This document shows positions 10,339 through 29,600 of a DNA stretch of 64,000 nt, piece by piece. Under the pieces are notes generated by a model, which was given only the letters and a program-made list of their open reading frames with translations, had not been told where the DNA came from and did no database searches. Position numbers and translations under genes: made by a program. Position 1 is the first letter of the stretch. The number at the start of each line of letters is the position of its first letter. Source of the DNA: Basidiobolus meristosporus CBS 931.73 (taxonomy: Eukaryota > Fungi > Basidiobolomycota); contig MCFE01000047.1 in the NCBI GenBank assembly GCA_002104905.1, positions 1 through 64,000 of the forward strand, given 5' to 3'.

Positions 10339-10635
10339 ATTTTCTCTAGTGGAAGGAACACAACCAGGATGCTCTGCGAAGGGATGCACATTACCTTTTA
10401 GTAAATTTTAGATCCATACTGTGAGCAGATATTCCAATGATTTGATTAATAGCTGGTTTAAATATATGCCTATTAATGATTACTTCATCTTATCATTGTT
10501 CGTGATTAATGACAACATAAATCGTTACGGAAATAAAAAAAACCTCTAGTTCATCCTTAGGACGGTGTATGTTTTGTTGACGAGCGAATGAAGCCATATT
10601 AGATATACATATTGCGTCAAGCTGCATTTTTTGTT

Positions 10636-11530
10636 ATGTCTGGTAGCCCAGAAGTTTTTGGAGAGAATAATGTGGAAGCGGAGGCGGTTTTTACTGCGAT
10701 GAACATCACCAATATTGTAAACCCACCAACAAGCAAAAAACGAAAAGCTGAAGAGAGAACGGTAGATCCTTCCAAGACTCTCACAGCTGCTGCCAAGGAT
10801 TCTGTGACTGTAAAAGATCGCTTTGATTCCGGTGAGAAATCCAATTCAATGGAAAGATCTATTTACACAGCTTGCACTGACACGGCTCGCGCTACCTCTC
10901 TTTAGTCAAGCTCAACAATGGAATTAGATTATTACAGGCCGTAAAGGTTGGAGATCCCGTAAATATGGGTGAGCAATATTCCAACGTAAGTAGATCCTTC
11001 GTTATATTAGGTGAGCCAAATACTAATAGCTTTTTAAAGATGCTGCGCCATTGTAAGCGACAATTGGAAGGTATGCTTTCAATTTCACTCGAGCATTTCC
11101 GAGGAGCAAAGAATACTCAGCCTTTCATTACACTTTAGAAGACGACCCAGACCCAGATTCCCGTGATCTTGACCTTGAATCTGTATATAACTATCTAGCT
11201 TGGGCTATTCATCCACAAGATCAAGACTGCCATAGTGAGCCGACACCACAAGCACAACGGATCCTCCGAACCCTGCTACACAATCTATCTAGTAAGATTA
11301 TCAATTTGGGCTGCCTCGAACAACGTAAACATGTTGCGCGTAAATTAGCCTTAGTAAAGGCAAATCTTGAGGGCATCGAAGTCAAAACCACGAGCAAAAA
11401 GAAAAAAACCGATAAGGACCGGCCGGCATCAAACAATCCATTGAGCATCACTAGGCCAATGCTTGACCCGTTCAAAACGGCAGAAAACTCGCAATCCTCA
11501 TCGGATGAAGACACCATGTCACCCAAATAG
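10636..11530 (+). CDS. hypothetical protein, about 230 aa, 3 introns, NLS-like basic stretches
   Basis: Exons join in frame across gtgag../gtaagt../gtatgc.. introns (MSGSPEVF..KKRK..|VKLNNGIRLLQ..|MLRHCKRQLE|EDDPD..LDLESVYNYLAW..SPK*). No family recognised. Confidence 0.65.
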
Positions 11531-12003
11531 AAATATACTCACAATTAGACCAGATACCGCAACCGCAACCGCAACGATAAATGCATCTTCAAAAATCCAT
11601 AGCACACTAATTTAATAAATGCAGTACAAGTGTCGTCTATAAACGCCCCATCAATTAGTTGGTACCCAGGTATGATTGATTGATCATACGGATCTTGTTT
11701 ATTCATGTGAGTTTTTTCTTAGATTCGTATGCGATGACACCCTCATAGAATGAAAATGGCTGATCGGTTTCACACTGCTCAATCTCGTAATGCCTTTATC
11801 GATATCGGGCACCAGCAAACATGAATCTTCATTGATTATTAATGTACTATCACTGATTGGTTTTCTATCTTGATGGAAACAAGGATTTATTACAAGTGGC
11901 TTTGGGTGTTGCGGGGTGTGGGTCTGATGTACATGAATATATGGTTGGATTAATTTTGAGCGCCGCCAATATCACCATTGCATGGCTAGAATGCAGATGC
12001 TCC

Positions 12004-13284
12004 TTACTTCTGGTCACCCTTGACCTGATCTATGAGCGAAATGATGGCGTCTTTTGTGCCCAGAACGCATGCAATGGCGGAGACGATAACGATCACAGCG
12101 CACCAGAGTAGTTCGATTTTGCCCATGGAGCGGAATCCATATAGCTTCAGGTAGAGGACGATGGGAGCAATGAAGATAATGATAGAGTAGGCGAGGGCAC
12201 CGATCAGCGACATCAGACTATTGACGTATGGAAGGAACATGGCAATCAACGCCAATACCACGATAACAGCAGAGCGCAGGATGGCACGCAAGATGAATTC
12301 TTTGGAGGCTGAGTGGTATCTACGGTCAATCCTCAACATACCCTCCACCTCGTATGCGAAGCCCGTAAGATACAGAGGTGCAGCAAAGATGACGTGGAGT
12401 GTGATCATGATAATAGCAACGTAAGTCGGTGGAGTCTGTGGCAAGCTGGTATAGATAGGGGATTGAACCGTATCACCGTAGACATAATACCCGCATACTG
12501 AGATCAAGACATACATGCCACAGATGGTTGCCATCGCCATGGATAAAACCTTGGGCCATGATTTTGGGTGGGCCATTCCGGATTCAACATGAGGGTAGAT
12601 AACGTTACCACCAAAAGAGAAGCAAATGGAGGCAAGGGCTAGAGGAATGCTGGAGCTATTGAAAAAACTATGTGTAACGGTAACACCCACTCGCTCATGC
12701 ATATCTATAAAGCCCACGACCACAGACACAATGACAACTACCAATGTAGCTAAAGCACCAAAAGCGGACATTAAAGCAATCTCCTTGATTGACTTCAAAG
12801 AAACGAATGGAATCCAGATGATAGCAGCAGATATGATCACCCACATCTTTAGCCCGATGTCAACACCAAGCTTCAAAACAAGACTTTCGATGTTCATAGC
12901 GGCCAGCAGGATGTAAACACAACCAGTACCAAGCAAGATCGAATAATTGAAGGTTCTGATGAAGTATTTTCCAAACTTTCCAAACGCTGCTTCGGCGATG
13001 GCAGGATAATCGGCTAACCGCGAAACCTTATCGTAATAAAGACTCTTGATCAAGAGGTTACCAGCATAAATGGCGGCAATCGTGAAGAACACGATCAGGA
13101 TAACTGCAAACCAACCACCCTGGTGCAGGGCGAGAGGGAGTTGTAAAGTACCACTACCGGCAATAACACACACGATGTTGGCAAAGGCTCCGAAGGAAGA
13201 TCCGGTCCGGGCATGGCCGGGCACATCCTCGTACTCCAGCTGATGGACGTCTCTGACCTCTTCTTTATCCGTATAGTTCGACAT
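12004..13284 (-). CDS. amino-acid/auxin permease (Aa_trans, AVT1-like) transporter
   Basis: Intronless with about 11 TM segments; GSSFGAFANIVCVIAGSGTLQLPLAL, FSFGGNVIYP and SLMSLIGA motifs. Confidence 0.92.
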   Translation of the reverse strand: MSNYTDKEEVRDVHQLEYEDVPGHARTGSSFGAFANIVCVIAGSGTLQLPLALHQGGWFAVILIVFFTIAAIYAGNLLIKSLYYDKVSRLADYPAIAEAAFGKFGKYFIRTFNYSILLGTGCVYILLAAMNIESLVLKLGVDIGLKMWVIISAAIIWIPFVSLKSIKEIALMSAFGALATLVVVIVSVVVGFIDMHERVGVTVTHSFFNSSSIPLALASICFSFGGNVIYPHVESGMAHPKSWPKVLSMAMATICGMYVLISVCGYYVYGDTVQSPIYTSLPQTPPTYVAIIMITLHVIFAAPLYLTGFAYEVEGMLRIDRRYHSASKEFILRAILRSAVIVVLALIAMFLPYVNSLMSLIGALAYSIIIFIAPIVLYLKLYGFRSMGKIELLWCAVIVIVSAIACVLGTKDAIISLIDQVKGDQK

Positions 13285-14462
13285 GTATGGAGTAACAAGC
13301 AATTATTAGGTTTTTTAGTATTAAAGAATCAAGAGGCCAGAATATGGGAAAGCAGAGGAGGTCAATCAGCTTAAATATTCGTTTTCAACGGCCGGGACCT
13401 ATGTTACACAATTAACCCAGGAGTCATGAGACACTCAATTGAGCGCAGTAATACGAACAGTACGGATTGAGAAATACCATCAAATTGTAACGTTGCTCAT
13501 GATATCACCTGAACTTACAGATAAATTAGAAACATGTAGTTGTTGATATGGCCCGACATAATGAGGAAGGGGGCGGCAATGGTGTAGGTCAACGCAAAAA
13601 AAGTGGATGGAGCTGAATTCAGAAAACGCGCATAATCATCATGGCTAATGAATATTAAACTGAGCCCTCTCGAGGCTAATCTATATACGTAGATGAATAC
13701 CCCATATATAATGACCATATAAGCTCGTTCAGCATTTCGTCACAAATAAGTGATTTTCTAGATTATTTACCGGATTTGGTAGAAACAGTAGGTTTAGAAT
13801 TAGAGATATGCATCAGAGTAGAAAGCATCTACATCTACATGCATCAGTAACAGATACACGGGAACCAACCAGTAGACTCTTTATCTCTAAGACCAACCAG
13901 ACTTGTTACTAAATCCGTCAAGATTGATTCATGGCCCTGGCCCAAGTTGGAAATCCACTGAATGCCTCACCCAAACCCAATCTACCAATCCTCTCCGACA
14001 TTTACGAAGAAATGATCAGATGACCTGATGAGCAAAAGCGATATCACTTGTTTTCCCAGGCTACAGTAATCCCGAGGTGGATATTTCATCACTAAATGCT
14101 TGGATCAGTTCCGTTTTGTTTGCAATCTGACTAGTGAGATGATGACTTGAACTGATCGAAGATATGTCATTTCAACCAAAATGTGGGGGATGGGAAAATG
14201 TGTCAAACTGGTTTTGATCGGGTCAGCTGCAAACGTCGTGGGAAATCTGACCAGTACTCGACCCTGGGAAAAATCTGGTTGGTGCTGAAGATCCTTACAA
14301 GTGGATAGATCAGTATTGCGCGGTAAGAATCATTTCGATCATACCCTAGTGATGATTAACCTAGTCCTAGCCCTAATCGATCTTGATCAAGTATATGCTG
14401 ATGATACTCTAGAATCTGAATGTTTATTATTGTAGTGTAGTAGAAGAGAAGGTAGAGCAGGT

Positions 14463-15399
14463 TTAGTTCTTAGCGGCGGAGGCGTGTTGAGAGCTGAGTC
14501 TTCTCTTCTTGATTTCCTCCTTTCTCTCACGTTGTTCCTTGACACGTTGGGCAAGAAGCTTGGCATACTCGGCAGCAGCCTCCTTGGAGGCTTGGGAGTT
14601 CTTGCGCTTGAGGGCGATTCTGTGACGCTTGCGTTGAAGAGTAAGAGGAGTCACGAGACGTTGGATCTTGGGTGCCTTAGTGTATGGCTTCTTCTCGGCG
14701 TTCTTGGGTTGGACCTCACGACGAATGACAAACTTACGAACATCATCTTCCTTGGTCAAATTGAACATTTTTCTAAGTTTGGAAGCTCTCTTGGGACCCA
14801 AACGCTTAGGCACAGTAGAGTCGGTCAATCCTGGGAGATCTTGTTCTCCTTGCTTGACAATAACCAAGGAAAGGACAGACAGATCAGATCCAACGATACA
14901 ACCACGAACACTCTTTCTCTTACGCTCGCCAGTGCGGCGAGGGCGGTAGCAAGAGTGACCCTTGGATAGAAGAAGACGAACACGGTGTGGGAGGAGGATG
15001 CCTTGCTTCATGGGGAATCCCTGTTTGTCGTTACCACCAGTAATGCGGAAGACATAGCCCTTGAATTCGTCACCGAGAGAATCTCCTGGGACTTCACTAG
15101 ACATACGTTTATCGTAGAAAGCACGACTACAGCAATCTCGTTGAGTGAGTCTGACTTGGGGAATGGAAGCTAGTGTCATACGTACACTTTACGTTCGTCA
15201 TCGATTTCAATGGTCTTTTGACAGCCAGTAGCTGGGTTGGCGATATTCAACTAAAATATTGGTAGAATGTCAGCGAAACGATTTCCCTCTGATTCATAAA
15301 GTTCATCAATGGATGGATAAATATTCTTTTTGGATTCACTAACACATGTTGGATCCTAACGACAACCTATTCCATTCCACTGATAGTAATTACCTTCAT
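14463..15399 (-). CDS. RPS6: 40S ribosomal protein S6 (eS6), 2 introns
   Basis: MK|[22 protein letters not shown]|[27 protein letters not shown]; strongly biased codons. Confidence 0.98.
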
Positions 15400-15705
15400 G
15401 TTGGATGGAAATCGTGCCCGTTAAACCTTTGTGAAAGAGGAAGTCGACAACCATCACGCCACCATATTTATTTATCAAACTCTTCATTATAATTCTCGTA
15501 GATTCCTGTCTCCAAAATTGATTTGTTGAAAACGAGGTTAAATCGCCTGCACGTTTGTTTACTTGTCTTGGAATTTGATAAATAAGCAGTCTAACATTGA
15601 ATGGATGCTATAATTTAAATTTATTAAAATATTTCTTCATATCCTTTAACCGTTATCATCGCCAATCCTAAACAGCGTTAATTCTTGCCATATTGTTCAA
15701 AGGGT

Positions 15706-18700
15706 ATGGCAAGTCATACGCCCAAATCCTCTAACGGTTCCCACTATTCCCCACGGGTTGCTCCACCGCAGCCAAAACCACTTCCCGGCATTAGCCTCTC
15801 CACTCGCAATCTGGTGCCCTTGCAGCCTCAACCTCGGCCGCATCCACTCTTCCATGCTGTACAATCGAGTGAAGATTCGGTAGCACTGAGCAATCCTCAA
15901 CAAGTTGTTGAGGCCGGTTCAACTTCAACCTCTTCCCCTTCCAACTTGAGTAAGACCCCTGTTCAACAAGCCCCTCTTGGTGCTCAGAATGAAACTCCCG
16001 AACGAACGCCTATACGTTTAATTCGTCAAGTTGCCAACAATCTAAATTTAATCAATGGTGAAATGAAGTCGAGAATGCCCGATAAAATCGTTATTGCGTC
16101 TCCACAAACCCCTGGCACGGAAAACGACTCAAGTTGGAACACTTCGCAGAATAGCTATATAAACTCTTCGAGCTTATCAACTGATGTGAGTCCTTTGAAG
16201 ATGTAAGTGCAAATCCACTTCCAAACCATTCCTTTCCTGTGTTAACCATTCGTGAAAGCCACCAAACCCCAAAGAGTGGGATAGTGTATAGTTTTTCACC
16301 CGAAAGTTTGTTGAATCGGACCTTGTACATTGGCACTACAGCTTTATCTACCGCCGTACAATATTTCTCCAAGATTTCTTATGATTCCGGTTCATAATTG
16401 GCCAAGGGGAAGAGGAGGATTCCGAAATATCGGTCTTTTTGGATAGATTTGACCCAGGAAGAAGACAAGACGACGCAAAGAGCAAGGTTCCAACTACTCT
16501 GCTCAACGAAGACCTATTGTATGAGGTTAGTGGACTGATTCTGTCTATGGTTGCGTGATAGAGGCTAAATAAGCCGGCGTGTATCAGATTGTCAATGTGT
16601 CGAACCAAGAGTCAACAAGTGACCCAACAATAGCACAGTTTAGTAAGGCTTTAGAGGTAATTCTTTCACGTTAATGGAGAGTGTTTACAACGTCAATGAA
16701 CTAACAATTTGATAAGGGGTTGGACAAGCAACTCGCTAGTTTAACAACTCAGCCTTCATCTTTGGCCTCAATTTTTTTCACTTGTGACCAGAAGGATGTC
16801 AAATGTAAGCACTTAAATCCTTCTGTTTACAGTACCAGTTAATAACCTTTTTCAAGGCAATGTAGTTGTTCCAAATGTACATTTCCGTCTTCGGTATATT
16901 AAGCCACTCAAAGTTGCCGAAGGGGATGTGTTGAATTCCCTGAAATTGAATCGCTGCCAAGATGGGAATATTGGGTAACTTTCCTTTCCAGAGCCTCTTG
17001 AAGGAGTTCCTTCTAATTCAATTCTCTCTAATAGATATATTGTTCTTGATAACTCCGGTTCGTTGAACGTGGTGTCTGAAGAAACGGTGCGAAGAAAGCA
17101 AAATAGGATAGTTGGATTGTATGTAAATGCATTTTACATTTGGAAAGGAACATTTTATTGACATTTTCAATGATTATCAGATGGGCATACAACGTGGAGG
17201 TTTCCAACAGTGGCCTGGTGGACAAGATTATTCAGTATATAGCGTGGAGATGGAAGCGAAATGGGAACAATTCCGACAGAAGGCCAATGATACTATTGTT
17301 CTTCTCATTCAATACCAATACCGGGTCTCTAGAACAGCTTTTCCTGGAGTGTTTACCCAAGGTTTGAGTTACACTATGTTGCCCTCCGGCTGGACTTCGA
17401 TTTACCTCTGTATCTTACAGATGCAACACCCAAAATATTTGGCTTACAGTTGTTGTAAGAGAATTCTTGAAAACGACCTAGAGCCAATAAGGTTCGATTC
17501 TTGGGAGTTCGTCCTCGATATATGTCCGGCCTTTCAAAAGACCATGGAGAATCGATTTGGAGTTCAAGTTTCAACAATCATTAGTCAACCCGAGTTTAGC
17601 CTCCTGGAAAGTCCAAAAACACCATTAGGGGAGAACAACGTCGACACATATCCTTTGGCCATCAATGGCGATCAATCGAATGCTACTATTTGCGATCTTT
17701 CACCTTCGCAGCAACGTACCCCACCTGTAAATAAGATTAACCAAGGCTACCAGTATGCCGGACACACCCCTCACCCGAAATCTACTCAAAGTCGCCAAAT
17801 CAACGACAGCATTTTGTTACGGGATTCCAGAGCTCCTCGCGTTACCTTCGCTTCTCAAGAAGAGGTGATATCGAATGGGGAGGTCTTCGAAGACTCTAGT
17901 ATCACCATAGAAGATCGCTTTCATAGTAAGTTTGCCCAGTTGTTCAAGTATTAATACGAAGATGACTCTAATTCTTCCTCGGAATTAGCGCCCACATACC
18001 CGTTAAAAAGTGGGGCAATTCAACCCAGTCGTGGTGGTAAGATGAGACTACCCTGGCTACTTGGCATCTATAGGTGATATTGACACCTTTTTCACTATTA
18101 GTTCCAACAAGAGAATCTCCTGAAACTTGTTGCTGCGGCTCGCATTTACCATCGACAAGCGCCCATCCAGCAACCTACGATTCGGATCATGTGGACCTTA
18201 CGAGATACCATCACCGCCTCGCTACATACCAGGCTCCAAAAACGGGGAGAGAGCCAAGGCCGATTCTTTCACACTCTTCAGTCTGCTCTTTGCACAAGCC
18301 TATCTCATCTTGTGATCTCAGCGATGGTCCTGTTGAGAGATTCACCAATAGTCTTCCAGATAGAGTGCCGTATGAATCGCCTAACCGGTCCGTGGATAAT
18401 AAGGAGCCGTATATATGTTACTCTTGCCATCAGAAAAAGCTCAATGTTCGATATATCTGTATGAACTGCAACGGTGATCAGCCAAGTGTACTCCCTACCA
18501 AACCATTACGTAACGGCACCCAGATAAAAGATAAACACTGTTGGAAGCGCAGTTGTGTGGATATGACCATCGAAGCTCCCGACGCCACACACATCGATGC
18601 ATCTACGCCAAATCAAGCCGAGAATATCTACGGAAGTGAACACAATTCGATTGAAGAAGTACGTGAGGAAGCTGTTCAGTACTGCTCCACTCCAGATCGA

Positions 18701-19887
18701 GAAGTCGGGGAAAGAGCAGACTTGGACCGATATAACTTCCACGATGACTACAGACTAGTTAAAGATCTACTATCTGCGGCGTATTGCGAGGTAGAGCGTA
18801 GGGAATCCAACAGCAGTGCCATGGAGCTAGTGAATCATAACAAGAACCCTGAGGTAGAATCGAAAAATCGGGAATCGAGATTGGACTTTTTACAACAACA
18901 AATCGATCTGCTCAAAGTGCAGCTTGCCAGCAATAGGGATAGGCCAGCTACCCTGGACTCGAACCAAATCACGACTACCCTTTACCAGCATGCCTCTACA
19001 AACACTACTGCTTTGGGTCATGGATCAATTACTGAATTAGTGCGTCGGGATGTTGGAGTGAACACCACGATACAAGAGGTAGCCCCTTGTTCCTCCCAAC
19101 ACAAGCCAACCAACCCCACCAAAAAACATCATGAGAGTGCGCAAGGTAGAAAAACGAATTCACGAGAGCGAACTCGAGAGCAACGTTTACAAATTGCCAA
19201 ACTACTTCGCAGAGTAAATGAAATCCTAGCTGAAGGTGGCGAAAGTACCATGGTCGATGATGGACCAAGCCTGAACGAGGAGAGCGAAGATATATATGTG
19301 GCTGAGGTTGCCTCCTCTGAGGATGTGGGTGATCAAGGGATAATGGACAAGATTGCTAGCATGATCTCGGATCCTGAGGAAAGTTTTTCTCTTTGCAAAG
19401 CTGATCAATCTACTCAGGCCGACATACCACAACCATCTTCCGAAACTTTCCGTGCAGTTAGATCTCAGTCTGTACGAGCGAGGGAGACTGTCACCACCAA
19501 TTCCGCGAATCAAAAGACCACCACCATTGTGAGAGACATAGAAACACAAACCAGCCAGATACTAGAGAGGTCCGGGTTCCTTCCTCGAAAAGATCTGAGG
19601 CCGTCATCAAAAAAAGTCCACTTGCATGGCAGGAAATCACGTACTGTCATGAAAAATGCTCCAGCAAATCTCGATTCAAGGGTATTCGTTGAGGAGGTGG
19701 ACGATACTACCGAGAGTGGTATTATGAGATTCACCCGAAATCCCACACAAGGCCGTAGCTTGAGTGCTAATCCCTCTCGGACATCACATGTAAGTTTTCG
19801 TCAATGGGTCACTGCCAATTCCTACTAACTTGGGTTGATTTCTAGGATGCCGTAGATAAGCTGGTCAATCGATACCTTCAAGGATAG
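15706..19887 (+). CDS. STIL/Ana2/SAS-5-like protein (STIL_N domain, coiled coil, STAN-like C-terminus); multi-exon, apparent 1-bp frameshift near 16391
   Basis: Spliced translation gives FIIGQ..VFLDRFDPGR..VPTTLLNEDL, HFRLRYIKPLKV, GYIVLD..IVGLW..LFFS..FLECLP, then SRLDFLQQQIDLL and terminal DAVDKLVNRYL. These match, in order, remembered vertebrate STIL motifs. The exon junction at about 16520-16600 is unresolved. Confidence 0.72.
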
Positions 19888-20033
19888 CATTACGCGGCTG
19901 CATCACTCTGTGAATATATAGATCCTTGTACATACCCGTGTTTATTTTAGCAATAGTAATCTCTAGTAGGCTTTGGAACGGTGAAGTTATGCTCGTGATA
20001 GAGAAACTGTTGGCCATCATTACTGAAATACAT

Positions 20034-20996
20034 TCAATAATAATCTATATCCTCCTCTATCTCCTCGGCCTGTTCTTCTTTCTCCCCGAGATAATTCATA
20101 CATACGAAGAATCCCTCGGTGGATTCTTTCCTCGAAGATGCTGGTTTTTCATGATAAACTTTGCCAAATTTACTTTGCAGTAAGAGCTTGAAATCACGCT
20201 CAGTTCCACCCATAAGAAACTATATATCGAGCCCATAAGCCTTGTGTAGAATGTCTCAGTTCTAGAAACAAATCATACCTTACAGACAAACGTCCCGCCT
20301 TTTCGCAAGACGGTCTCTGCAAAGCCTAACGCGCTTTCACATAAGTTCTTGAAACAAGTGCAAAACGGTTAGTGTGGCATCCTAAATGGTGGCGAGGAAA
20401 CGTGTGTATCTTACCATGATTCGGGCATGGTCTACTGCGTGGTTTCCTTGAAGAAAATAGCGCTTAGTGTGATACGCTGTAGAAGAGGAGAGTACTCCTA
20501 CTTACCGGTAAACGAAGGAGCCATATCAGACAAAACGACGTTAACTTTGCGATTGTCCAAGATCTTTTTAATGGCATTTTGCGTCGAAATATGGGTGAAA
20601 TCCTTCTGCAGTATCTCCACACCAGGAATAGGATTGATTGGTAACAGGTCTATAGCAACAACGCATCCGTCTGTTGGCTTTCTTTCTTCCCCCGCTTTCA
20701 CCTTTCGAAACACTTTTCTAGACGCAACCTGGGACCAACCACCTGGGCTTGCTCCACAATCTATACAAATGTAACCTTTCTTCAAAAATCTATGCTTGTC
20801 ATTCAACTCAACCAGCTTGAAAGCACTACGAGCACGGTAATTATCTACTGTGGCTTTCTTGACAAACTGGTCGTTTCTTTGCCTTTGTGACCATTGCTTT
20901 GCGGAAGCGTAAAAGCGTATTGATACTCTAGTTGGGTTAGGTATGAGCCTACTGCTTACACCAAAAATTGCGGTCAAGGGTGAGCCTGGATAACAT
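20034..20996 (-). CDS. MRM2: mitochondrial rRNA 2'-O-methyltransferase, FtsJ/RrmJ family (MRM2-like)
   Basis: YRARSAFKLVEL, IDCGASPGGWSQV, VLSDMAPSFTG|NHVVDH, GGTFVCK and ASSRKESTE. N-terminus MLSRL.. needs removal of one G at 20978-20980. Confidence 0.88.
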
Positions 20997-21267
20997 TGAA
21001 CTGGTGAGGATAGAAATTTGGGATGGCGACATGCCTAACTACTAGCCTGTTTCGTGATTCCTATTTGCTGTGTTCCCTGAAAAGTTTGTTATCACTGATC
21101 AAGTCAATTCGACTTCAGAGCCCTCAAATCATGGCTAAATGGGTTTTGAACCAAGCCACAGATTAAGCAAACATCCATGAATGTCCACGTGTATAGCAAA
21201 TAGATCATAGGCATGGATGCTGGAAATGTGTGGTATTGAAAGACTATCTTCAACCTAAAGAGGCGAG

Positions 21268-22885
21268 ATGAAGAAAAGACAAGTGGTTACCTCGTTCATT
21301 GTATGTGACGTGGAGACATCTGACGGCAAGGAGGTCCTAAAGCCTGCTCGTTCCCGGTCAAGTCAAGGCCAAAGAATCCTGATACTCAAACGAAGTGAGA
21401 AAGTCCATACTTATCAGTAAATATCGAGTTTGTTCCCAAAGGGTTGACCCATCTTCCTTGTTGAATAAGGTTGTTGATTCTTTTGCTTTTGTAAGAAACC
21501 ATTGGGCTGGAGTTAGCGGGTCAATCGAGGAGCAGGACAAAAACCCTCTAGAGCGAGCACTAACGGAGATAAAGGAGGAGTTGGCACTGAATAGAGACTC
21601 GGTGGCTCTAATCCGCCCCGGAAAACCTCTGACCTTTCTAAGTAAAGAGCTGGAAACCGAATGGACGGTATTTCCATTTCTTTTCAGGCTGCTGGTTGAG
21701 CCCAACCAAATACAGTTGGATTTCGAGCATGTAGACAAGAAATGGATCAAGGTAGAGGAGCTGTCCACCTTTGAAACAGTACCAAATCTTCGGGAAGCAC
21801 TAGAAAGGGTTTATCTCCCCGAGTTCGTTCACAAAGGCTTGATCGACATGTCCAACGATCGAAATTCGGGTGCACAACAGTTGGCAGACAAGGCATTGGA
21901 GGTGGTTCGGCAGCTGGTAGTAAGTAAGGCTCTAAGAGGTGACAACATCAGCATCGAAGGCTACCTCGAGAAAATACGGATTATTGGTTGGCACCTGGTG
22001 AAGATCCGCCCCTCGATGCAAGCGGCAATCTCATCCACACTATCGGTTGTTTATAACACTATTAGCCAGGCGACAAAGGAAGGGGACATAAGTCTGGACA
22101 TATTTGAGAAGCAAGTCAGCGAGAGCATCACAACCTTCAGAAGAGAATCGCGAGAGTCCCTTCATAAACTGAACGTCCAATTCTTAGCCACCTTATTTTC
22201 TCCACTGTTCGCCGAGGCCAGCGATGACTCTAAAGCGCAACATTATTCTATCATGACTATAAGTTACAGTTCTACCGTCTTCGGGGTGTTCTGTATGCTT
22301 TGCCATCAGGTATTGATCGCGCCAATTGACCACAAACTGGATATCTACATTATGGAGTCTCGGCCATTAAACGAAGGTTCATTGGGACTGGCTGCCAAAT
22401 TGGATGACTTCTTGGCGCCTTCTGCCAACAATCCCAAAGCTAGTGCCCGCATCAGAATCCAGGTCATCACCGATGCCTCGTGTGCGTACTTCATGCCGAA
22501 GATGACCCACGTGTTACTTGGCGCCGACCATATCTCTGGAGTAGACGGTAGCGTAGTGAACAAGATAGGGAGTCTGAACCTTGCCTTGGCTGCGAAGCAT
22601 TTTGACAAGAAAGTCCACGTTGTGTCCCGGCTGGACAAGGTGTACGGGGTTGAGGAGGAGGAAGTGGAGGAGAACGAGCCGGTTGAGGTGTTTGTTTCTT
22701 ACGGGGGTGGCTTTGAGAAATGTCTAGCGCGCAAGCGAGTGGAAGTACGTAACATCTACTTTGACAAGGTCACCCCAGATCTTATTGATGGATATATTAC
22801 TGAGAATGGTCATCTCCTTCTGGAAGACATCCAATCTTTCTGGGGAGACAGACAAAAGCTTGTGACAGCTCTGTTAGATCTTTGA
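21268..22885 (+). CDS. Nudix hydrolase fused to an IF-2B/eIF2B-like (sugar-phosphate isomerase fold) domain; 1 intron
   Basis: Exon 1 MKKRQVVTSFIV..RILILKRSEKVHTYQ is spliced to NHWAGVSGSIEE..ALTEIKEEL (Nudix box-like). The C-terminal domain has TISYSSTV, ESRP..EG, LLGADHI, VVNKIGS and YFDKVTPDLIDGYITENG. Confidence 0.85.
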
Positions 22886-22959
22886 CTTTCTTGGTGAATT
22901 TATTCAATAAAGAAAACTCATTGACGAGGATTAGCTAAGGTTGAGTGGTTATTACGATA

Positions 22960-24484
22960 TTAATCAAATGGAAGCCGTTTGGCACTTTGTGATGCAGCAA
23001 TAGCGGATGGAACTCTCATGCCACAGCAGGTGGGTGCTTCCTGGCCATAGGCATAAACGTGGGCCACCTCGCAGCAATCGTCATCTTCGTCTGGTACATT
23101 TTGGCTGCCTTCGAATCGGAGTAAAGAGCCGAACATGAAATGCTGCATAATGGGAAGCTTTCCTAGGACTTCTGCTTTGTACATCTTAATCATGCCTGAA
23201 TTGACCTTGTCCCAAGTCTTCACTCCGCTGATGTCGTCCAGCATAGGGGAATGCCATCTAAGTGATGCAGTCTTGACCTGTGTCGATGTTAGCAAAGGGT
23301 TAGCACCGGTGCGATGGCGAGTGCTTAATTGATGCAAGTACATTGTTGACGAACTTGATGCAAGCCAGATACATGTAGTCTTTGGAGAATTCCTCCACAA
23401 TGTCTTGGTCGTGAATGGCCTTGGGGCGAATATGCTTGTGACCTTGGTATTGGTGTTGAGCGAAGAACTTGCAACGCTGGAAATCACGGGTATTTACCTC
23501 GTAGTTGTGCTGCTCCAAACAAAAAAGGCAAAAAGTGGTAGTCGTCAAGTCCCCATACACCGTGAGAGCCGGCAGGCTCCAGCCAGTAGGCGAATTGAAG
23601 CTTTCGCATCAGGTCGATGTATCTAGTACAATGGATACCACCGGTCAATTCACTCTGAATCGATGAAAAGCAACCCGTCTGCCTCTTACCCATAAAACAG
23701 CTTCAGTACCAAGGCAGCGTAATCCTCTTCGTGGATTAGATTCAGCTTCTTGATGCACAACCTGGAAATCAGAGCATGCTTTGTCAACGGCCAAGATCAA
23801 ATAGTCAAGAAGTAAGTAGGAAAAGCCTACATCCAAGCAATGAAGTTCGCCTCATGTCCGGTACCATAGTCGATGCGTCGGTGATTACCAAAGCTCTCAA
23901 CCAGATATTTACTGACCTCTGGGATTGCTTCCTCGGGTACAACATCCTTCAAGAGATCAGAGGCATTCTATATTCGGGTTAGTCCTGAAAGGTCATAAAT
24001 TGGAGTAGTTTTGTGTAGTTTTATCAACCTCGGCTACCCGGTCGTACCATGTTCTAAAGGCAGGATTGCCGAAACGGCTTTGTTCATTGTGCACCGGTTG
24101 GATTTCATCTACCCAGTCGGAAAGCCTCTTGATGATGTTCAATAGCTTCTCTACCACCTACGGGAGTTCGAGAATATACAATCAATGCTCCATAACTTTC
24201 CGATATAACTTGACCCAACGAGGGATAGTGGAGCGACAACAAACCGGGGAAATATGGCAATCTGTTCTTGTTGGCTTTCCAACCACTTGCTCGTTCAAGG
24301 CGATGATAAAACCCAAATACTCCTCATAGCAATCAGACTCTAAGAAGCGAGCCAAGTCTTCTGGGGTAAGAATCTGCCGAGTGGGAACTCGAAAAGTGGC
24401 TTCGTCGCCAGGCGCTGAGTCAATGGTTGGTTTCGAATGTTGGTGCTCATGTTCGTGAGCACAGCTTGGCGAACTAGGCATCAT
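22960..24484 (-). CDS. PP2A phosphatase activator PTPA (RRD1/RRD2 family), multi-exon
   Basis: [75 protein letters not shown]; the C-terminal CCxxxxPSAIAA..LPFD is RRD2-like. Confidence 0.93.
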
Positions 24485-24728
24485 GGAAGTGAAGTCAAAG
24501 CGATATCATCATCTGGTAAGCCTCTAAATCGAATACAAATGAATCTCATCGATTCGAAATTTTCCGAATTTGTTTTTCAAATACAATATGGGATTTATTT
24601 TTTCTTGGGTGTTGGACTGTCCTTTTCGCGCAGTCCAACTACAATCTCTTCATTAATGCTTACACGCAATTCATCTATAAGGGGAGGAGGGAGATCATAC
24701 ATCTAATCGCTCATAAGTCCAGCGATTC

Positions 24729-26433
24729 CTATTTACCAAAGCACTTCTTCAGCAAATGATAAGCCACATCACGGTGGTTCCAGTAGGAAAAATGAGCCCT
24801 TGAGCCAACCAAATATTCGTTGGCCACATAGTGGACAAAGCTCTCCTGTAGCGTAAAGTCTATGCGATGCGAGAGATCAGGGCACTGGTTGAATAGAACT
24901 GCTCGGTCTACAGACGAAGCCTCCGGCACTTCTTCATTAAATGCAACAGGCTCTGTGGGTGGACCGTCTATATCGGAGTAAAACTCCCCAAGGACCGTCT
25001 CAACAGTGTCTTCCAACTCGCTTAGCCCTTCACCCTCGCTGCTTTCCAGGGGTGTAGGAGAGATGATGCTGAATTTTTCCGCTAGATACATCACGGTACC
25101 CAAGAATCGGCGTGTGGTGGAGCTTTGCTCCTTGTCGTCCATCTCACTTGACTGCTTTTGCTCCGATTCACTCGACTCACCAGCTGGATTGGGGTCTTGT
25201 GTGAGATCGATGACCTCCATTTTTCTCCGCTTTGGTATGTCGCTATCTTCCTGCTCCAACAGGGAGCTGGAGGCTCTCTTTTCAATTTCAACCTGGGTGT
25301 ATCCAAACACTGTGGCCATCTGCCGGGAGAACACCTCCTTGGCTTGGTTGAGGGATGGTAAGCTCGGAATTATGGAGTTCATACTAATGGGAAACCGACT
25401 ATCGTAGAAATTTTCCAAAACCACAGGCGGAATGGTCTTGTATTCAGTATCTATTAAAGGCTCCAACCGATAGCCCTGTAGGATTGTGTTAGATGAGTCT
25501 ATGTATCGAGAGGATCGTAAAATGAGACATTACTATCGGGTCATATTGGTGGAAGATATTGTACAGTTCGCAATAATCCGGCAGGCGATAGGTGTCGAAG
25601 GTTTGATCTCTCATGACCATGACGGCGCCGAGAGGACTTCCGAATGTAAAGAGGTTGCGTGGCTTAAATAGAAGCTTTGTCACCTCAAATCTCAAACAGT
25701 CACGGCCATCGGCATTGACCCCTTCTTCTTGATGTGATAGAATATCATACACACATACCCCTCCCAGGCTATACCCGATGACCGAAAACTCTCCGGTATA
25801 ATACGGATGCTTTTCCATAAATGCTTCGTACTCTGCGTTCAATGCCTTGGCGACGATATCGATGATCTTCTGACCGTGGCGGTTGGTGAAGTAGTACAAT
25901 ACATCGGCTATAATATCGTTGTTGACACGTCTTACTGCAGGGCAGGTTGGAAGTGTGATGGAATTCATCCGCCTGGATACAACGTTTAGTTTGTTTCTGA
26001 ATGTGTGGCAAGCATACACTTACATGTCGACAATATCGTGAAGCACATTGTGCCATTCTAGAGGTCAAATTATAAGTAAGCCATGGCCTGGTGTACTACA
26101 ACCAGAGGAATTCCTACCTAGAGGGATAACTTCGACAGAACCTTGGACTTCGGGGAATTTAGCTGCCACCACTTCTTTGATGTTCTCACGAAACTGCTCC
26201 ACTATCATTCAGCGCTGTTGGTTAAGATTTCCGGTTGAGAACGTTTCATCTGCGCATTACCTCTCATTATGTACTTTCCTCGATTTCCGATAGTGGGGCC
26301 CATCCCGTGGACCATGAAGAAAACATGCTCAACTGTAGTAGGATGAATGAATTATAGAACTGTGCATATAACCGACTCCTATCTGTTGGAGATAAACTTC
26401 TCACGTACCTTTGTTCTCTGGTGGAGTTTCCAT
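24729..26433 (-). CDS. DDHD-domain phospholipase (PA-PLA1 family), multi-exon
   Basis: HVFFMVHGMG, IGYSLGG (GxSxG), FTFGSPLG, YNIFHQYDP and AHFSYWNHRDV. Confidence 0.9.
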
Positions 26434-26622
26434 ATTGTCGGAACAGAGGAAGGCTGTGAGCCAAATGTTACCATCATGCGATATTCATGTTAATCCCGAT
26501 TTAATTAATATTTAAACAGTAAAATGGCTAGATTAAATATCCAATTCATACATGTGAAATACGTGTCTGCCCGCTATCACTTTGCATATCCTGCCTCTTC
26601 ACCTTGCCACGTCTTCCATGTC

Positions 26623-29600
26623 ATGAAAACAGACACTTTTGGAATAGGTAGTTTGACTGACATAGAGTCACGTTTTAATGGTGTCCGTATACCCGAAGTG
26701 GAGCTTCCCGATTCTTCTTCCAAAACGATCGGCAATGCCGTGACTGAACTTTACAAGTTACAAGAAGACCTTCAAATATATCTTCAAGGAGGCCCAATTT
26801 TCGTAGCCAACTTGGAGGCAACCCAAAAAAGCAAGGCCCAGTCGTTACTAGAACAGGTACTGGAGGAAACTGCCCTTTACGAGGAGTTTTTGAGAAATTG
26901 TAAGCGGCAAGGAGGCGTGACACACTCTTGTGTTGGTGGTACTAATGTGTGTTTCTTTTGTAGCGGAGGACCTTCATTTGGACAAGATATTGAACGAATC
27001 CGATAGTGAAGAATTCCTAGGCACCGAAGCACTCGATTCGATATCTGTGGATTCCCCTCTTGATGTACATACACTTTACAACTTCAAAATAGTTGTGGGA
27101 ACTTTCTGTAACCGGAATCCTTTTTGTAGGATACTCAATCCAACGGCTCGCGGCCGAGCTTGCTACGTTCAGGTAGCTCAAAAGTATCTGATGTAAATCT
27201 TTACTCCACCATGGCCCACTCTCCCTCGTCTTTTGAGACCTCCTCTATCTCCTCGCGAAACAACTTCTCTCCAAGCTCTCAAAATACGTTTTCCCCCCGG
27301 ACATTCACTCCAACCCTATCACAAACCGAATACGACGACTTCATATTGGGCGTAGATACTTTGCAAGAGGCAGTCACCACAAGTGCGTTTAGATGGACCC
27401 CCCTCATGAAGATATCGAGTCACTTGTATTCAGACAGCATCAAGCATGAAATTGGCTTGCCATCTGTCTTGGCGGTAGCATTTTTCATTAGTAGTCATCG
27501 TGGTCGAATCTTCAGAAGAAACTGATGTTTTGATTGTCATTCTAGGCAAGTGGGTATATCGCTGTAGGCACCTCACGTGGATTTATTTTGCTGTATGACT
27601 TCTACCAAAATTTCGTTAGAACCCTAGACCCCAACTCCCTAGGTATCGCAGACATGTATGATTGCAACCGAGCATGATCTTGCTAACCCTCGACTCTAGA
27701 TTGCGGAGGAGTTTCGTCCTTGGCCATATCCTCGGATCATTCGGCTGTTGTTTGCGGATACGAGAGAGGCCACATCGCCATGTGGGATATCCAGAATGGC
27801 TCGCTGATCAGATCCATAACACCAATGAAACGAGGCCCTTCCCTCATCCGGAAAAATGGCCATCGATATGGGGCAAGCATCGTTCACGTCTCTTTCGTTG
27901 GAGCCGGAAAGAACAAGGTTGTCTCTGGTGACGATCAGGTACCCTAAAGGTCGAGATCAACCTGTGCATTGCCAAGTTCGCTAAATGAATTTTCAAAGGG
28001 AATGGTGTTCATTCACTTGATTTCCAAAGTCATGCTGGTCAAAAATGTAGAGACCACTCGGCTTTTGGGAAAACCACAAGAAGCAGTCGAGAAAGCTTCT
28101 CCACAAACGACTATTTTGGGTCTATCGGTACTCCCGTATGGTGAAGTGCAGCACGTGACTGACTCGCATGGGTTGATGGCCATCATCACCCCCCACAAAG
28201 TAACGTCATAACAACATGGTTGCTCGTAGGTAAAAGTGCTGACAGCCCGTACTCTAGTTACTTATTATACAGACCAAGCCCAGCCCCGAGATTGTACTCA
28301 AAGTGAAAAGGGAAATGCTTGATGCGGAGACGATAGCCAAAAATGACGAACATTTATCTGGCTGTATTGCTTGGTACCCTTCCGTCAAGAGAAGAGTTGG
28401 TAATGTCCCCTCGTTGAGTTTATCTGGAAATTCCGCTAACAATGATTGGCTTACAGTGCAAGAGCAAACAACCGATCCCCTACTAGCATTTTCATGGAAC
28501 GGCTACTTGTGTATTATCAATGTCAAGAATACTAACAGCCCACCCGCAGCTTCGCGTAAAAGAGGCCCAAACATGCAGTTTGTAAAACTTGGCGAGTGGA
28601 ACAACGACGCCTCGATTGTGGGCTTACAGTGGTTGAGTTACCAGGTATTCCCTTGCTAAGCACTCTTTGCGGCAAACCCATTGATCTCATGACCATCACT
28701 ATATAGATTTTGATTGTGATAACCAACGATGAGCAAGTGATCGCCTTCGATCCTAGAAAGATGCAAGAGTTGGAGCGGTGCAGCATCAGCACCTACAAAC
28801 TAATCTATCGAGACTTGTTTAATGCCCCTATGAAGGAATGGTTGAGCCAACAATCTGCTACTGCTCACATGGAGATGGCTTACTATCATAGTGTTCGCTC
28901 GCATCGAGGCAAGCTTTTCGCATTGGTAATTTGGGAATTTAGAGTTTGTCCCTTGTACTTCCATCTAACCATGTTGTGAATAGGGGGTGGACCAACTTTA
29001 TTTTGGCGTCATTTTATCATGGTCAGATCGAATTGTGTCTCTGATGGACGAGGGCGACTATATTAGAGCCATTCGTTTGGTTACCTCTTTCCTCTCGGGA
29101 GATTTCAATCTAGCTGTTACTGGGCTTCCTGATGATGAGGAAAGCCGCATCGTGCTGATAGGTGAGAAGCTTTTGGAGCTTATATCGGCGTCGTTGAACT
29201 ATGCCTTTTCCACAGAAAGATCCCTGGAGATTGCCGATGATAGTGAGCTATCGACGTTGGAGCCACACTACGCCATCCTTTGCCAATCTTGTTTTGACGC
29301 GTGCCTGAGCATGGATGCGGCGGACTTTTTGTTCAACACTGTTTATGAAAAGTACATTGATTTCGGATATCAAGCAGTATTCATCTCAACGCTCGAACCC
29401 TATATCCTCGAAGATAAGATCAAGGATCTTCCACCCTCGGTGATGCTTGATTTTGTTAAACACTACTCCAGTCAACCAGCCACTCTTCCTCAATTAGAGC
29501 AGTGTATCTTGCACATGAACCCATACGGCATTGACATTGACCGAGTCCTCTCTGTAAGCCGGACTGAAGGATTGTATGACGCATTGATTTATGTCTGGAA

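Follow-up and report, generated by a model that had tools for sequence, protein, structure and literature searches.

A Probable STIL Orthologue in the Non-flagellated Fungus Basidiobolus

STIL proteins follow a plan consisting of an N-terminal domain (NTD), a proline-rich motif, a coiled coil (CC) and a C-terminal conserved domain (PMC5095913). The crystal structure of the NTD is available from Trichoplax (5OI9/5OID), and its fold in 5OI9 comprises two MPN/JAB-like subdomains (PMC5928214). The CCD sequences differ among STIL, Ana2 and SAS-6 (PMC4830966). Outside animals, STIL orthologues have been listed (PMC6559791, supplement 1) for Monosiga (EDQ91796) and, as candidate EGF76849, for Batrachochytrium dendrobatidis, so that the occurrence of the family beyond animals, which the original prediction had put forward as new, was already known.

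The animal centriole-assembly proteins are stated to be absent from fungi other than the flagellated chytrids; Coemansia possesses a centriole-like remnant, yet no centriole-assembly proteins have been found in it (PMC6559791, PMC6070874). Basidiobolus has been described as having a nuclear associated body that resembles a centriole and in which the microtubules are unusually arranged (PMC3281927); it is also the genus that the original prediction had mentioned on account of its microtubule-ring organelle. Our search of the literature returned no paper tying Basidiobolus to STIL, SAS-6 or Plk4. The gene described here, from a window of 64,000 nucleotides of Basidiobolus meristosporus CBS 931.73, is probably an orthologue of STIL, the scaffold of centriole duplication (Ana2/SAS-5 family), and a STIL-like role may be supposed for its product. 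Batrachochytrium and Monosiga have flagella and canonical centrioles, whereas Basidiobolus has neither; what looks new is the retention of STIL in a non-flagellated, terrestrial fungus. A STIL gene that is intact, expressed and under selective maintenance would provide a molecular test of whether the Basidiobolus nuclear body is a derived centriole, and is relevant to the loss or remodelling of centrioles during the fungal move to land.

Gene Structure and Expression

Splicing by hand yields a model of 11 exons encoding ~1195 aa, separated by ten GT..AG introns of 53-65 nt, at window positions 15706-19887 (+). Window positions 10461-26735 are identical to MCFE01000047.1 of GCA_002104905.1. The exons are as follows; X3 is a public read set, and the orthologue is that of B. 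ranarum.

15706..16202, + strand: exon 1, start ATG at 15706; disordered N-terminal extension of ~165 aa (ORF and splice model)
16259..16525, + strand: exon 2, in which the STIL_N-like domain begins; holds the frame break and DRFDPGR
16588..16656, + strand: exon 3; intron 2 joint in X3, junction residues kept in the orthologue
16717..16804, + strand: exon 4; GT..AG model, orthologue intron at the same position and phase
16857..16974, + strand: exon 5; intron 5 joint in X3, NVHFRLRYIKPLKVAE block identical in the orthologue
17035..17118, + strand: exon 6; X3 joint 16973>17034, while at 17118 a loose end runs into the start of exon 7
17181..17361, + strand: exon 7 (IVGLW..., ILLFFSF..., LECLPK); model, 65% identity to the orthologue
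17421..17925, + strand: exon 8; the folded N-terminal domain ends at ~17624 and a disordered linker follows; intron 8 joint 17925>17989 in X3
17989..18036, + strand: exon 9, 16 codons; X3 contig 11 has joints 17925>17989 and 18033>18101 with AT between
18102..19789, + strand: exon 10, the long C-terminal half, disordered for the most part, with conserved helices; ORF, X3 contig coverage
19846..19887, + strand: exon 11, 13 codons and stop, DAVDKLVNRYLQG*; candidate STAN-like C-terminal helix

The six peptide segments quoted in the original prediction are all present in this product, in the order and at the places given there (among them DRFDPGR at 16442-16462 and SRLDFLQQQIDLL starting at 18875, with the last exon occupying 19846-19887). 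Run X3 is tagged 'DNA?', yet its contigs are RNA-like, with adapter loose ends and GT..AG joints. Introns 2, 5, 8 and 9 are precisely skipped in these contigs and intron 6 is indicated by a loose end; the joint after exon 9 in contig 11 is the predicted one, apart from a G>A difference at 18034. Across junctions 1-7, 9 and 10, which are all the comparable ones, the B. ranarum protein shows the residues of the model, and at each of these nine positions the B. ranarum gene has an intron of the same phase. The coherent 11-exon model, the X3 joints and the B. ranarum junctions bear out the claim that these exons belong together: this is one spliced, transcribed and intact gene.

Its reading frame is interrupted at a single place in the window:

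16388..16391, + strand: 1-bp deficit of the window sequence relative to read sets X1, X2 and X3

Compared with the window, X3 contains one more G after 16388, and in X1 and X2 a T is added after 16390 and T16386G is present; each restores the frame. The restored reading ...D[S/A]GFIIGQG... agrees with ...ETGFIIGQS... in B. ranarum. The frameshift that had been predicted is thus real in the window sequence but does not belong to the gene itself: being absent from three of three public read sets, it is an assembly error or a rare allele. A small intron in its place was rejected, because the sole GT..AG choice (16355-16406) is in the wrong phase. It is this 1-bp error (or rare allele) that led to the mis-annotation of the gene in GCA_002104905.1, where it is broken into models of 319 and 91 aa, hidden from view much as had been anticipated, which is a point of practical concern.

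The N-terminal Domain

The folded domain spans ~335 aa and is followed by disorder, a conserved short helix and further conserved helices. It contains the following motif:

16442..16462, + strand: DRFDPGR, the STIL N-terminal-domain signature motif (translation); Trichoplax STIL has these seven residues as well (HMMER alignment)

Positions 16391-16525 alone (45 aa) match the Pfam profile STIL_N (PF15253) with 31.9 bits (E=8.8e-8), and the B. ranarum orthologue does so with 29.8-33.3 bits. The profile search that had been proposed as a check thus gave scores above the curated cut-off of 27 bits for both the window exon and the orthologue, and STIL_N is the sole Pfam family over its cut-off. The match covers profile positions 29-129 of 404, only the first quarter, and segments spanning the remainder of the domain gave no STIL_N match even at E<=10. 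When the DRFDPGR exon was compared with 177,635 PDB sequences, a single match was returned, 5oi9_A, which is the Trichoplax STIL NTD (residues 80-118, E=1.1); two other exons of the domain did not retrieve 5OI9. PDB searches with these two exons, the whole orthologue, the domain, a small profile, the coil and the linker blocks gave His-tag or chance matches only. The AlphaFold2 single-sequence model of the domain has a pLDDT of 33 and is unusable, and Foldseek matches obtained with it are meaningless.

A protein unrelated to STIL that shares a DRFDPGR-type loop by chance, or as a motif only, might give a similar picture: the similarity is confined to ~100 residues, the E-value of the PDB match is poor, and all feature searches of the ESM Atlas with a protein language model fell below noise level. 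Such a coincidence is nevertheless highly improbable, since the Pfam E-values (3e-8 to 9e-8) apply to the whole library, the one PDB sequence retrieved is exactly the STIL NTD, and both domain size and protein layout suit STIL. Judged by its sequence, the folded N-terminal region is a member of the STIL_N family.

Large protein searches for which the orthologue's N-terminal domain served as query retrieved only the orthologue itself and no animal or chytrid STIL, and a metagenome scan with the full domain gave 100 pattern matches, none of them confirmed. Exon 10, searched against representative proteins, matched the B. ranarum orthologue and, from the genome to which the window belongs, a 91-aa fragment, but nothing else; as a 584-aa ORF in a large protein search it had no match in the length range covered.

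The B. ranarum Orthologue and Selection

The orthologue is KAK9720601.1 of B. ranarum, a protein of 1360 aa from a syntenic locus, at which Aa_trans, RPS6e, FtsJ, IF-2B/NUDIX, PTPA and DDHD are neighbours in both species. Identity between the two proteins amounts to 52.6% over aa 1-655 and to 44% over the C-terminal 384 aa, and the first 21 residues of exon 1 are the same. In this two-species comparison synonymous sites are saturated (pS ~0.75), and pN is lowest in the N-terminal domain (0.19), higher in the C-terminal part (0.30) and highest in the linker (0.44). Purifying selection has maintained the gene in two Basidiobolus species that are deeply diverged.

These data also bear on the idea that the locus is a decaying pseudogene or a contaminant, for which the 1-bp frameshift in the window and the fragmentary annotation could be cited. 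This is contradicted by a frame that is whole in three read sets, by spliced transcripts, by pN far below pS, and by the syntenic locus with its fungal-type short introns, present in two independent Basidiobolus assemblies. As far as the reads, the intron comparison and pN/pS allow, both are refuted, and we consider that they retain almost no probability.

Motifs Outside the N-terminal Domain

Three further elements come into question as counterparts of STIL motifs. The candidate coiled coil, STAN-like tail and CPAP-binding motif are conserved blocks, arranged in the order in which they would be expected from STIL. The features concerned, apart from the last exon, are:

15748..15789, + strand: proline-rich N-terminal motif SPRVAPPQPKPLPG, conserved; candidate CPAP/SAS-4-binding site of PRxxPxP type
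18872..18934, + strand: short conserved helix with a/d heptad, ESRLDFLQQQIDLLKVQLASN; candidate central coiled coil
19163..19240, + strand: second conserved helix REQRLQIAKLLRRVNEILAEGG, predicted (pLDDT 85-90) and kept in both species

The PRxxPxP motif has been defined previously (PMC5095913). It is exact in B. ranarum only (PRPKPLP, aa 21-27), the window having PQPKPLP with R replaced by Q; the motif is short, and by our estimate would occur by chance in ~2% of proteins.

Of the 14 residues with which ESRLDFLQQQIDLLKVQLASN starts, 13 are shared with the B. ranarum orthologue, in which AlphaFold2 predicts a helix here with a pLDDT of 69-84. The heptad positions L-L-I-L of this candidate coil correspond to L733/L736/I740/L743 of the human STIL CCD peptide (PMC4830966). 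It is also the best site for that peptide in the window protein, with an ungapped score of 24 against a shuffled mean of 26.7; the orthologue gives p ~0.1 against shuffles, so that the likeness is at chance level. A PDB search with the coil found no STIL-CC chain.

AlphaFold2 modelling of the C-terminal 351 aa of the orthologue gives three helices that partly reach a pLDDT of at least 70, and a fourth, C-terminal one below 50. This last helix, predicted with low confidence, is encoded by exon 11, which has 10 of its 13 residues in common with the orthologue and is preceded by an intron that agrees with the orthologue's in position and phase. Both Basidiobolus species have kept the tail ...SHDAVDKLVNRYLQG, a candidate STAN-like segment. 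There is no STAN profile in Pfam; the human STAN segment 'SMEANAIAL' (1061-1069) is known from a primer (PMC4830966).

The original prediction is supported in part, but its 'full architecture' goes beyond what the sequences show: STIL_N is recognizable only over the positions given above, and the coil does not score above shuffles. The KEN box is absent from both Basidiobolus proteins. In vertebrate STIL this degron is regulatory, and it is not known to be universal in STIL/Ana2/SAS-5.

Comparison with STIL, Ana2 and SAS-5

The layout of the Basidiobolus protein matches the published STIL plan. Like STIL (human STIL; Trichoplax STIL NTD, 5OI9), it has an N-terminal STIL_N domain in which a DRFDPGR loop is followed by a VPT segment, and an overall size of ~1200-1300 aa. 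Its middle is likewise long and disordered, its short central helix has a/d core residues identical to those of STIL, and there are conserved helices towards the C-terminus. Unlike STIL, it carries a 165-aa disordered extension ahead of the domain, is recognizable only within Pfam positions 29-129 and has no KEN box; its proline motif lies at the extreme N-terminus rather than after the NTD, and the protein stops directly after the STAN-like helix. The N-terminal placement of this candidate motif resembles Ana2, in which the SAS-4-binding proline motif is likewise N-terminal. A central coiled coil and a C-terminal conserved motif (both candidates here) are shared with both Ana2 of Drosophila and SAS-5 of C. 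elegans, but these are proteins of ~400 aa without the STIL N-terminal domain (PMC5095913), which the Basidiobolus protein has. EGF76849 and EDQ91796 are likewise STIL orthologues of non-animal opisthokonts, recognized by profile searches only.

A descendant of STIL need not have kept its partners. The NTD could have been repurposed as a protein-binding module outside the Plk4-STIL-SAS-6 pathway, for instance in acentriolar spindle-pole or other microtubule-organising roles, with C-terminal helices that are lineage-specific. The partial detection of STIL_N, the candidate status of the CC and STAN blocks (the coil being at chance level), the missing KEN box and the loss of the PRxxPxP arginine in B. 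meristosporus all accord with this, as do surveys in which fungi other than chytrids yielded no genes for centriole assembly (PMC6559791, PMC6070874). We regard repurposing as unlikely, given that the conserved blocks run in STIL order, that the C-terminal blocks are under purifying selection and that the genus has a centriole-like organelle (PMC3281927).

If the protein instead works as animal STIL does, its N-terminal proline-rich motif would contact SAS-4/CPAP, the short central coiled coil would self-associate and dock on Plk4, and the conserved STAN-like C-terminal helices would recruit SAS-6 once phosphorylated. Such a module would nucleate and copy a centriole-like, microtubule-containing, nucleus-associated organelle at the Basidiobolus spindle poles. 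We propose, tentatively and as a possibility to which we give somewhat less than even weight, that Basidiobolus has kept a working Plk4-STIL-CPAP(-SAS-6) module that builds and duplicates its non-canonical microtubule-ring nucleus-associated organelle, and that this organelle may be a living intermediate between centriole and spindle pole body, with cartwheel-type assembly and a symmetry other than nine triplets.

The family assignment is echoed in the UniRef entry of the B. ranarum protein, which bears the automatic name "STIL N-terminal domain-containing protein". Within the disordered linker of exon 8, two conserved blocks stand out, QYAGHTPHP and PRVTFASQEE.

Fungal Context and Likely Role

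We confirm that Basidiobolus meristosporus, a non-flagellated fungus, carries a genuine STIL-family gene, intact and expressed (STIL being an animal centriole-duplication protein). A centriole-like nuclear body whose microtubules are unusually arranged has long been described from Basidiobolus (PMC3281927). Centriole-biogenesis proteins have not been identified in fungi other than chytrids, and Coemansia yielded none of them, even though it has a cylinder resembling a centriole (PMC6559791, PMC6070874). STIL orthologues have been reported from Monosiga brevicollis and Batrachochytrium dendrobatidis (PMC6559791, supplement 1), and the presence of STIL at the opisthokont root was therefore already established. 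Our literature search returned no paper pairing Basidiobolus with SAS-6, and none of the Basidiobolus papers checked that mention "centriole" or "centrosom" deals with these centriole genes. We infer that the protein would most likely act, with Plk4 and CPAP, as a scaffold for the assembly of the Basidiobolus centriole-like organelle. The value of the gene is that an old cell-biological question becomes testable.

Gene Structure, Splicing and Reading Frame

Three-frame translation of 15650-19950, with frame-hopping coding segments joined at GT..AG sites, yields a hand-spliced model of the STIL-like gene (15706-19887) with 11 exons, ten introns of 53-65 nt each and a product of ~1195 aa:

15706-16202, +, exon 1
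16259-16525, +, exon 2
16588-16656, +, exon 3
16717-16804, +, exon 4
16857-16974, +, exon 5
17035-17118, +, exon 6
17181-17361, +, exon 7
17421-17925, +, exon 8
17989-18036, +, exon 9 (16 codons)
18102-19789, +, exon 10
19846-19887, +, exon 11

Translation recovered every peptide segment quoted in the original prediction, each at the position claimed for it. Window 10461-26735 agrees with contig MCFE01000047.1 of GCA_002104905.1 in every base. The gene is also hidden, as had been proposed, since the public annotation of GCA_002104905.1 shows only two separate models inside it:

15706-17247, annotated model of 319 aa, no Pfam hit on record
18461-18733, annotated model of 91 aa (P0002), 100% identical to the window, no Pfam hit on record

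The sole defect of the model is one base missing near 16388-16391, within exon 2, and it is because of this 1-bp error that the gene is mis-annotated in the assembly. Three public read sets cover the stretch: X1 and X2 are DNA, and X3 is labelled "DNA?", yet is transcriptome-like, with Illumina adapter loose ends on its contigs and exact intron skips. Around the frame break, X3 differs from the window only by an additional G after 16388, and X1 and X2 have an extra T after 16390 plus T16386G (Ser -> Ala); both changes restore the reading frame. Since all three sets keep the frame, the gene itself is intact, and the break is either a mistake in the assembly or a rare allele; the frameshift does not stand as a property of the gene. 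The X1 and X2 contigs differ from the window at ~0.3-0.4% of positions. Although X1 and X2 come from one sample, they also differ between themselves, suggesting two haplotypes or nuclei.

The X3 contigs leave out exactly 16526-16587, 16975-17034 and 17926-17988 (introns 2, 5 and 8), all with GT..AG ends. A further joint runs from 18033 to 18101 with "AT" in between, corresponding to modelled intron 9 plus G>A at 18034, and a loose end at 17118 continues with the 15 bases that open exon 7 (intron 6). Because these joints and the loose end match the modelled splices, half of the ten introns (2, 5, 6, 8 and 9) are directly supported; introns 3, 4, 7 and 10 sit in X3 coverage gaps. Intron 1 (16203-16258) is unspliced in one X3 contig (window 16064-16263), which could represent intron retention, pre-mRNA or DNA carry-over. 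The A of the X3 contig at 18034, where the window has G, would give Gly -> Asp in exon 9.

The Basidiobolus ranarum Orthologue

Exon 10, searched against 1.84 billion cluster representatives, found two proteins, the 91-aa fragment P0002 and P0001 (1360 aa). The latter, KAK9720601.1 of B. ranarum, is recorded as "hypothetical protein" and named "STIL N-terminal domain-containing protein" in UniRef; it shares 52.6% identity with the window protein across residues 1-655 and 44% across the final 384. DNA identity is 64-86% along the two loci, which are collinear, and the genes around the B. ranarum copy match those around the window copy (amino-acid transporter, RPS6e, FtsJ, IF-2B/NUDIX, PTPA, DDHD). 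Those flanking the gene in the window are:

14463-15179, -, ribosomal protein S6e gene (upstream)
20498-20977, -, FtsJ-type methyltransferase gene (downstream)

Beyond FtsJ lie IF-2B/NUDIX, PTPA, DDHD and VPS8, in an order identical in B. ranarum. The rebuilt B. ranarum coding sequence has nine introns, every one matching the window model in position and phase. Intron 8 (17926-17988), backed by RNA contigs, is missing from the B. ranarum gene as annotated, where a longer exon spans the site (L001:7776-8484); this reflects either intron gain or loss, or mis-annotation in B. ranarum.

The N-terminal Domain

STIL_N (Pfam PF15253, curated cut-off 27 bits) is the only family exceeding its cut-off, at 31.9 bits (E=8.8e-8) with the 45-aa exon piece 16391-16525 alone and at 29.8-33.3 bits with the B. 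ranarum orthologue, in agreement with the original prediction. The match covers only profile positions 29-129 of 404, and the Pfam search gave no STIL_N match for pieces spanning the remainder of the domain. Against 177,635 distinct PDB sequences the same exon piece had one match only, 5oi9_A/5oid (E=1.1, not significant alone), aligning ...ISVFLDRFDPGR...KVPTTLLNEDL with Trichoplax ...IINIDRFDPGR...HVPTAVIPGDV. 5OI9 and 5OID are the Trichoplax adhaerens STIL N-terminal domain, with a fold of two MPN-like subdomains (PMC5928214), and it is telling that the sole match is to the only STIL domain that the PDB contains. The other domain exons did not retrieve 5OI9 in PDB sequence searches, and large protein-database searches recovered no other STIL. 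AlphaFold2 without an alignment gave an unusably low pLDDT (33) for the domain, whose length (~335 aa) fits the 348-aa Trichoplax construct. At the sequence level, STIL family membership of subdomain 1 is well supported, and homology of the whole N-terminal domain is plausible but unproven.

Motifs and Helices Outside the Domain

The STIL family plan comprises the N-terminal domain, PRxxPxP, a central coiled coil, STAN and KEN (PMC5095913). B. ranarum matches PRxxPxP exactly, with PRPKPLP at residues 21-27 in a highly conserved N-terminus, and the B. meristosporus site reads PQPKPLP. AlphaFold2 confidently predicts a helix for the candidate coiled-coil block ESRLDFLQQQIDLLKVQLASN in the orthologue (pLDDT 69-84), and the block has the same residues as the human coiled-coil domain (CCD; peptide from PMC4830966, Table 1) at L733, L736, Q737, Q739, I740 and L743; mutating any of L733, L736, I740 or L743 strongly destabilises the human coil, and coiled-coil sequences differ between STIL, Ana2 and SAS-6 (PMC4830966). 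This site is the top CCD match in both Basidiobolus proteins, a similarity without statistical support: the best ungapped scores (window protein 24, orthologue 31) are no better than those of shuffled peptides or proteins (null mean ~26-27). The terminal exon (exon 11) is a candidate STAN-like segment; human STIL 1061-1069 reads SMEANAIAL, as translated from a primer in PMC4830966. A KEN box is absent from both Basidiobolus proteins. The full STIL architecture originally proposed is only partly supported.

Downstream of the candidate coiled coil is a second conserved helix, very confidently predicted (19163-19240, REQRLQIAKLLRRVNEILAEGG; pLDDT 85-90). Two more helices complete the C-terminal model, the third weaker and the terminal one of low confidence; all else in it is disordered. 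STIL and Ana2 typically have such a layout, though it is not diagnostic.

Selection and Conserved Blocks

Synonymous sites are saturated between the two Basidiobolus species (pS ~0.75), and nonsynonymous differences are far below synonymous ones:

N-terminal domain, pN 0.19
N-terminal extension, pN 0.30
C-terminal third, pN 0.30
Linker, pN 0.44

Conservation between the two species is block-wise:

First 27 residues
Folded domain
QYAGHTPHP
PRVTFASQEE
ESRLDFLQQQID
DVGVNTTIQ
Helix REQR.QI.KLL.RVNEILAEGG
PEESFSLC
IVRDIETQTSQ
Terminal SHDAVD..VNRYL.G

Judged by these substitution patterns, the STIL-like gene is functional rather than a relic.
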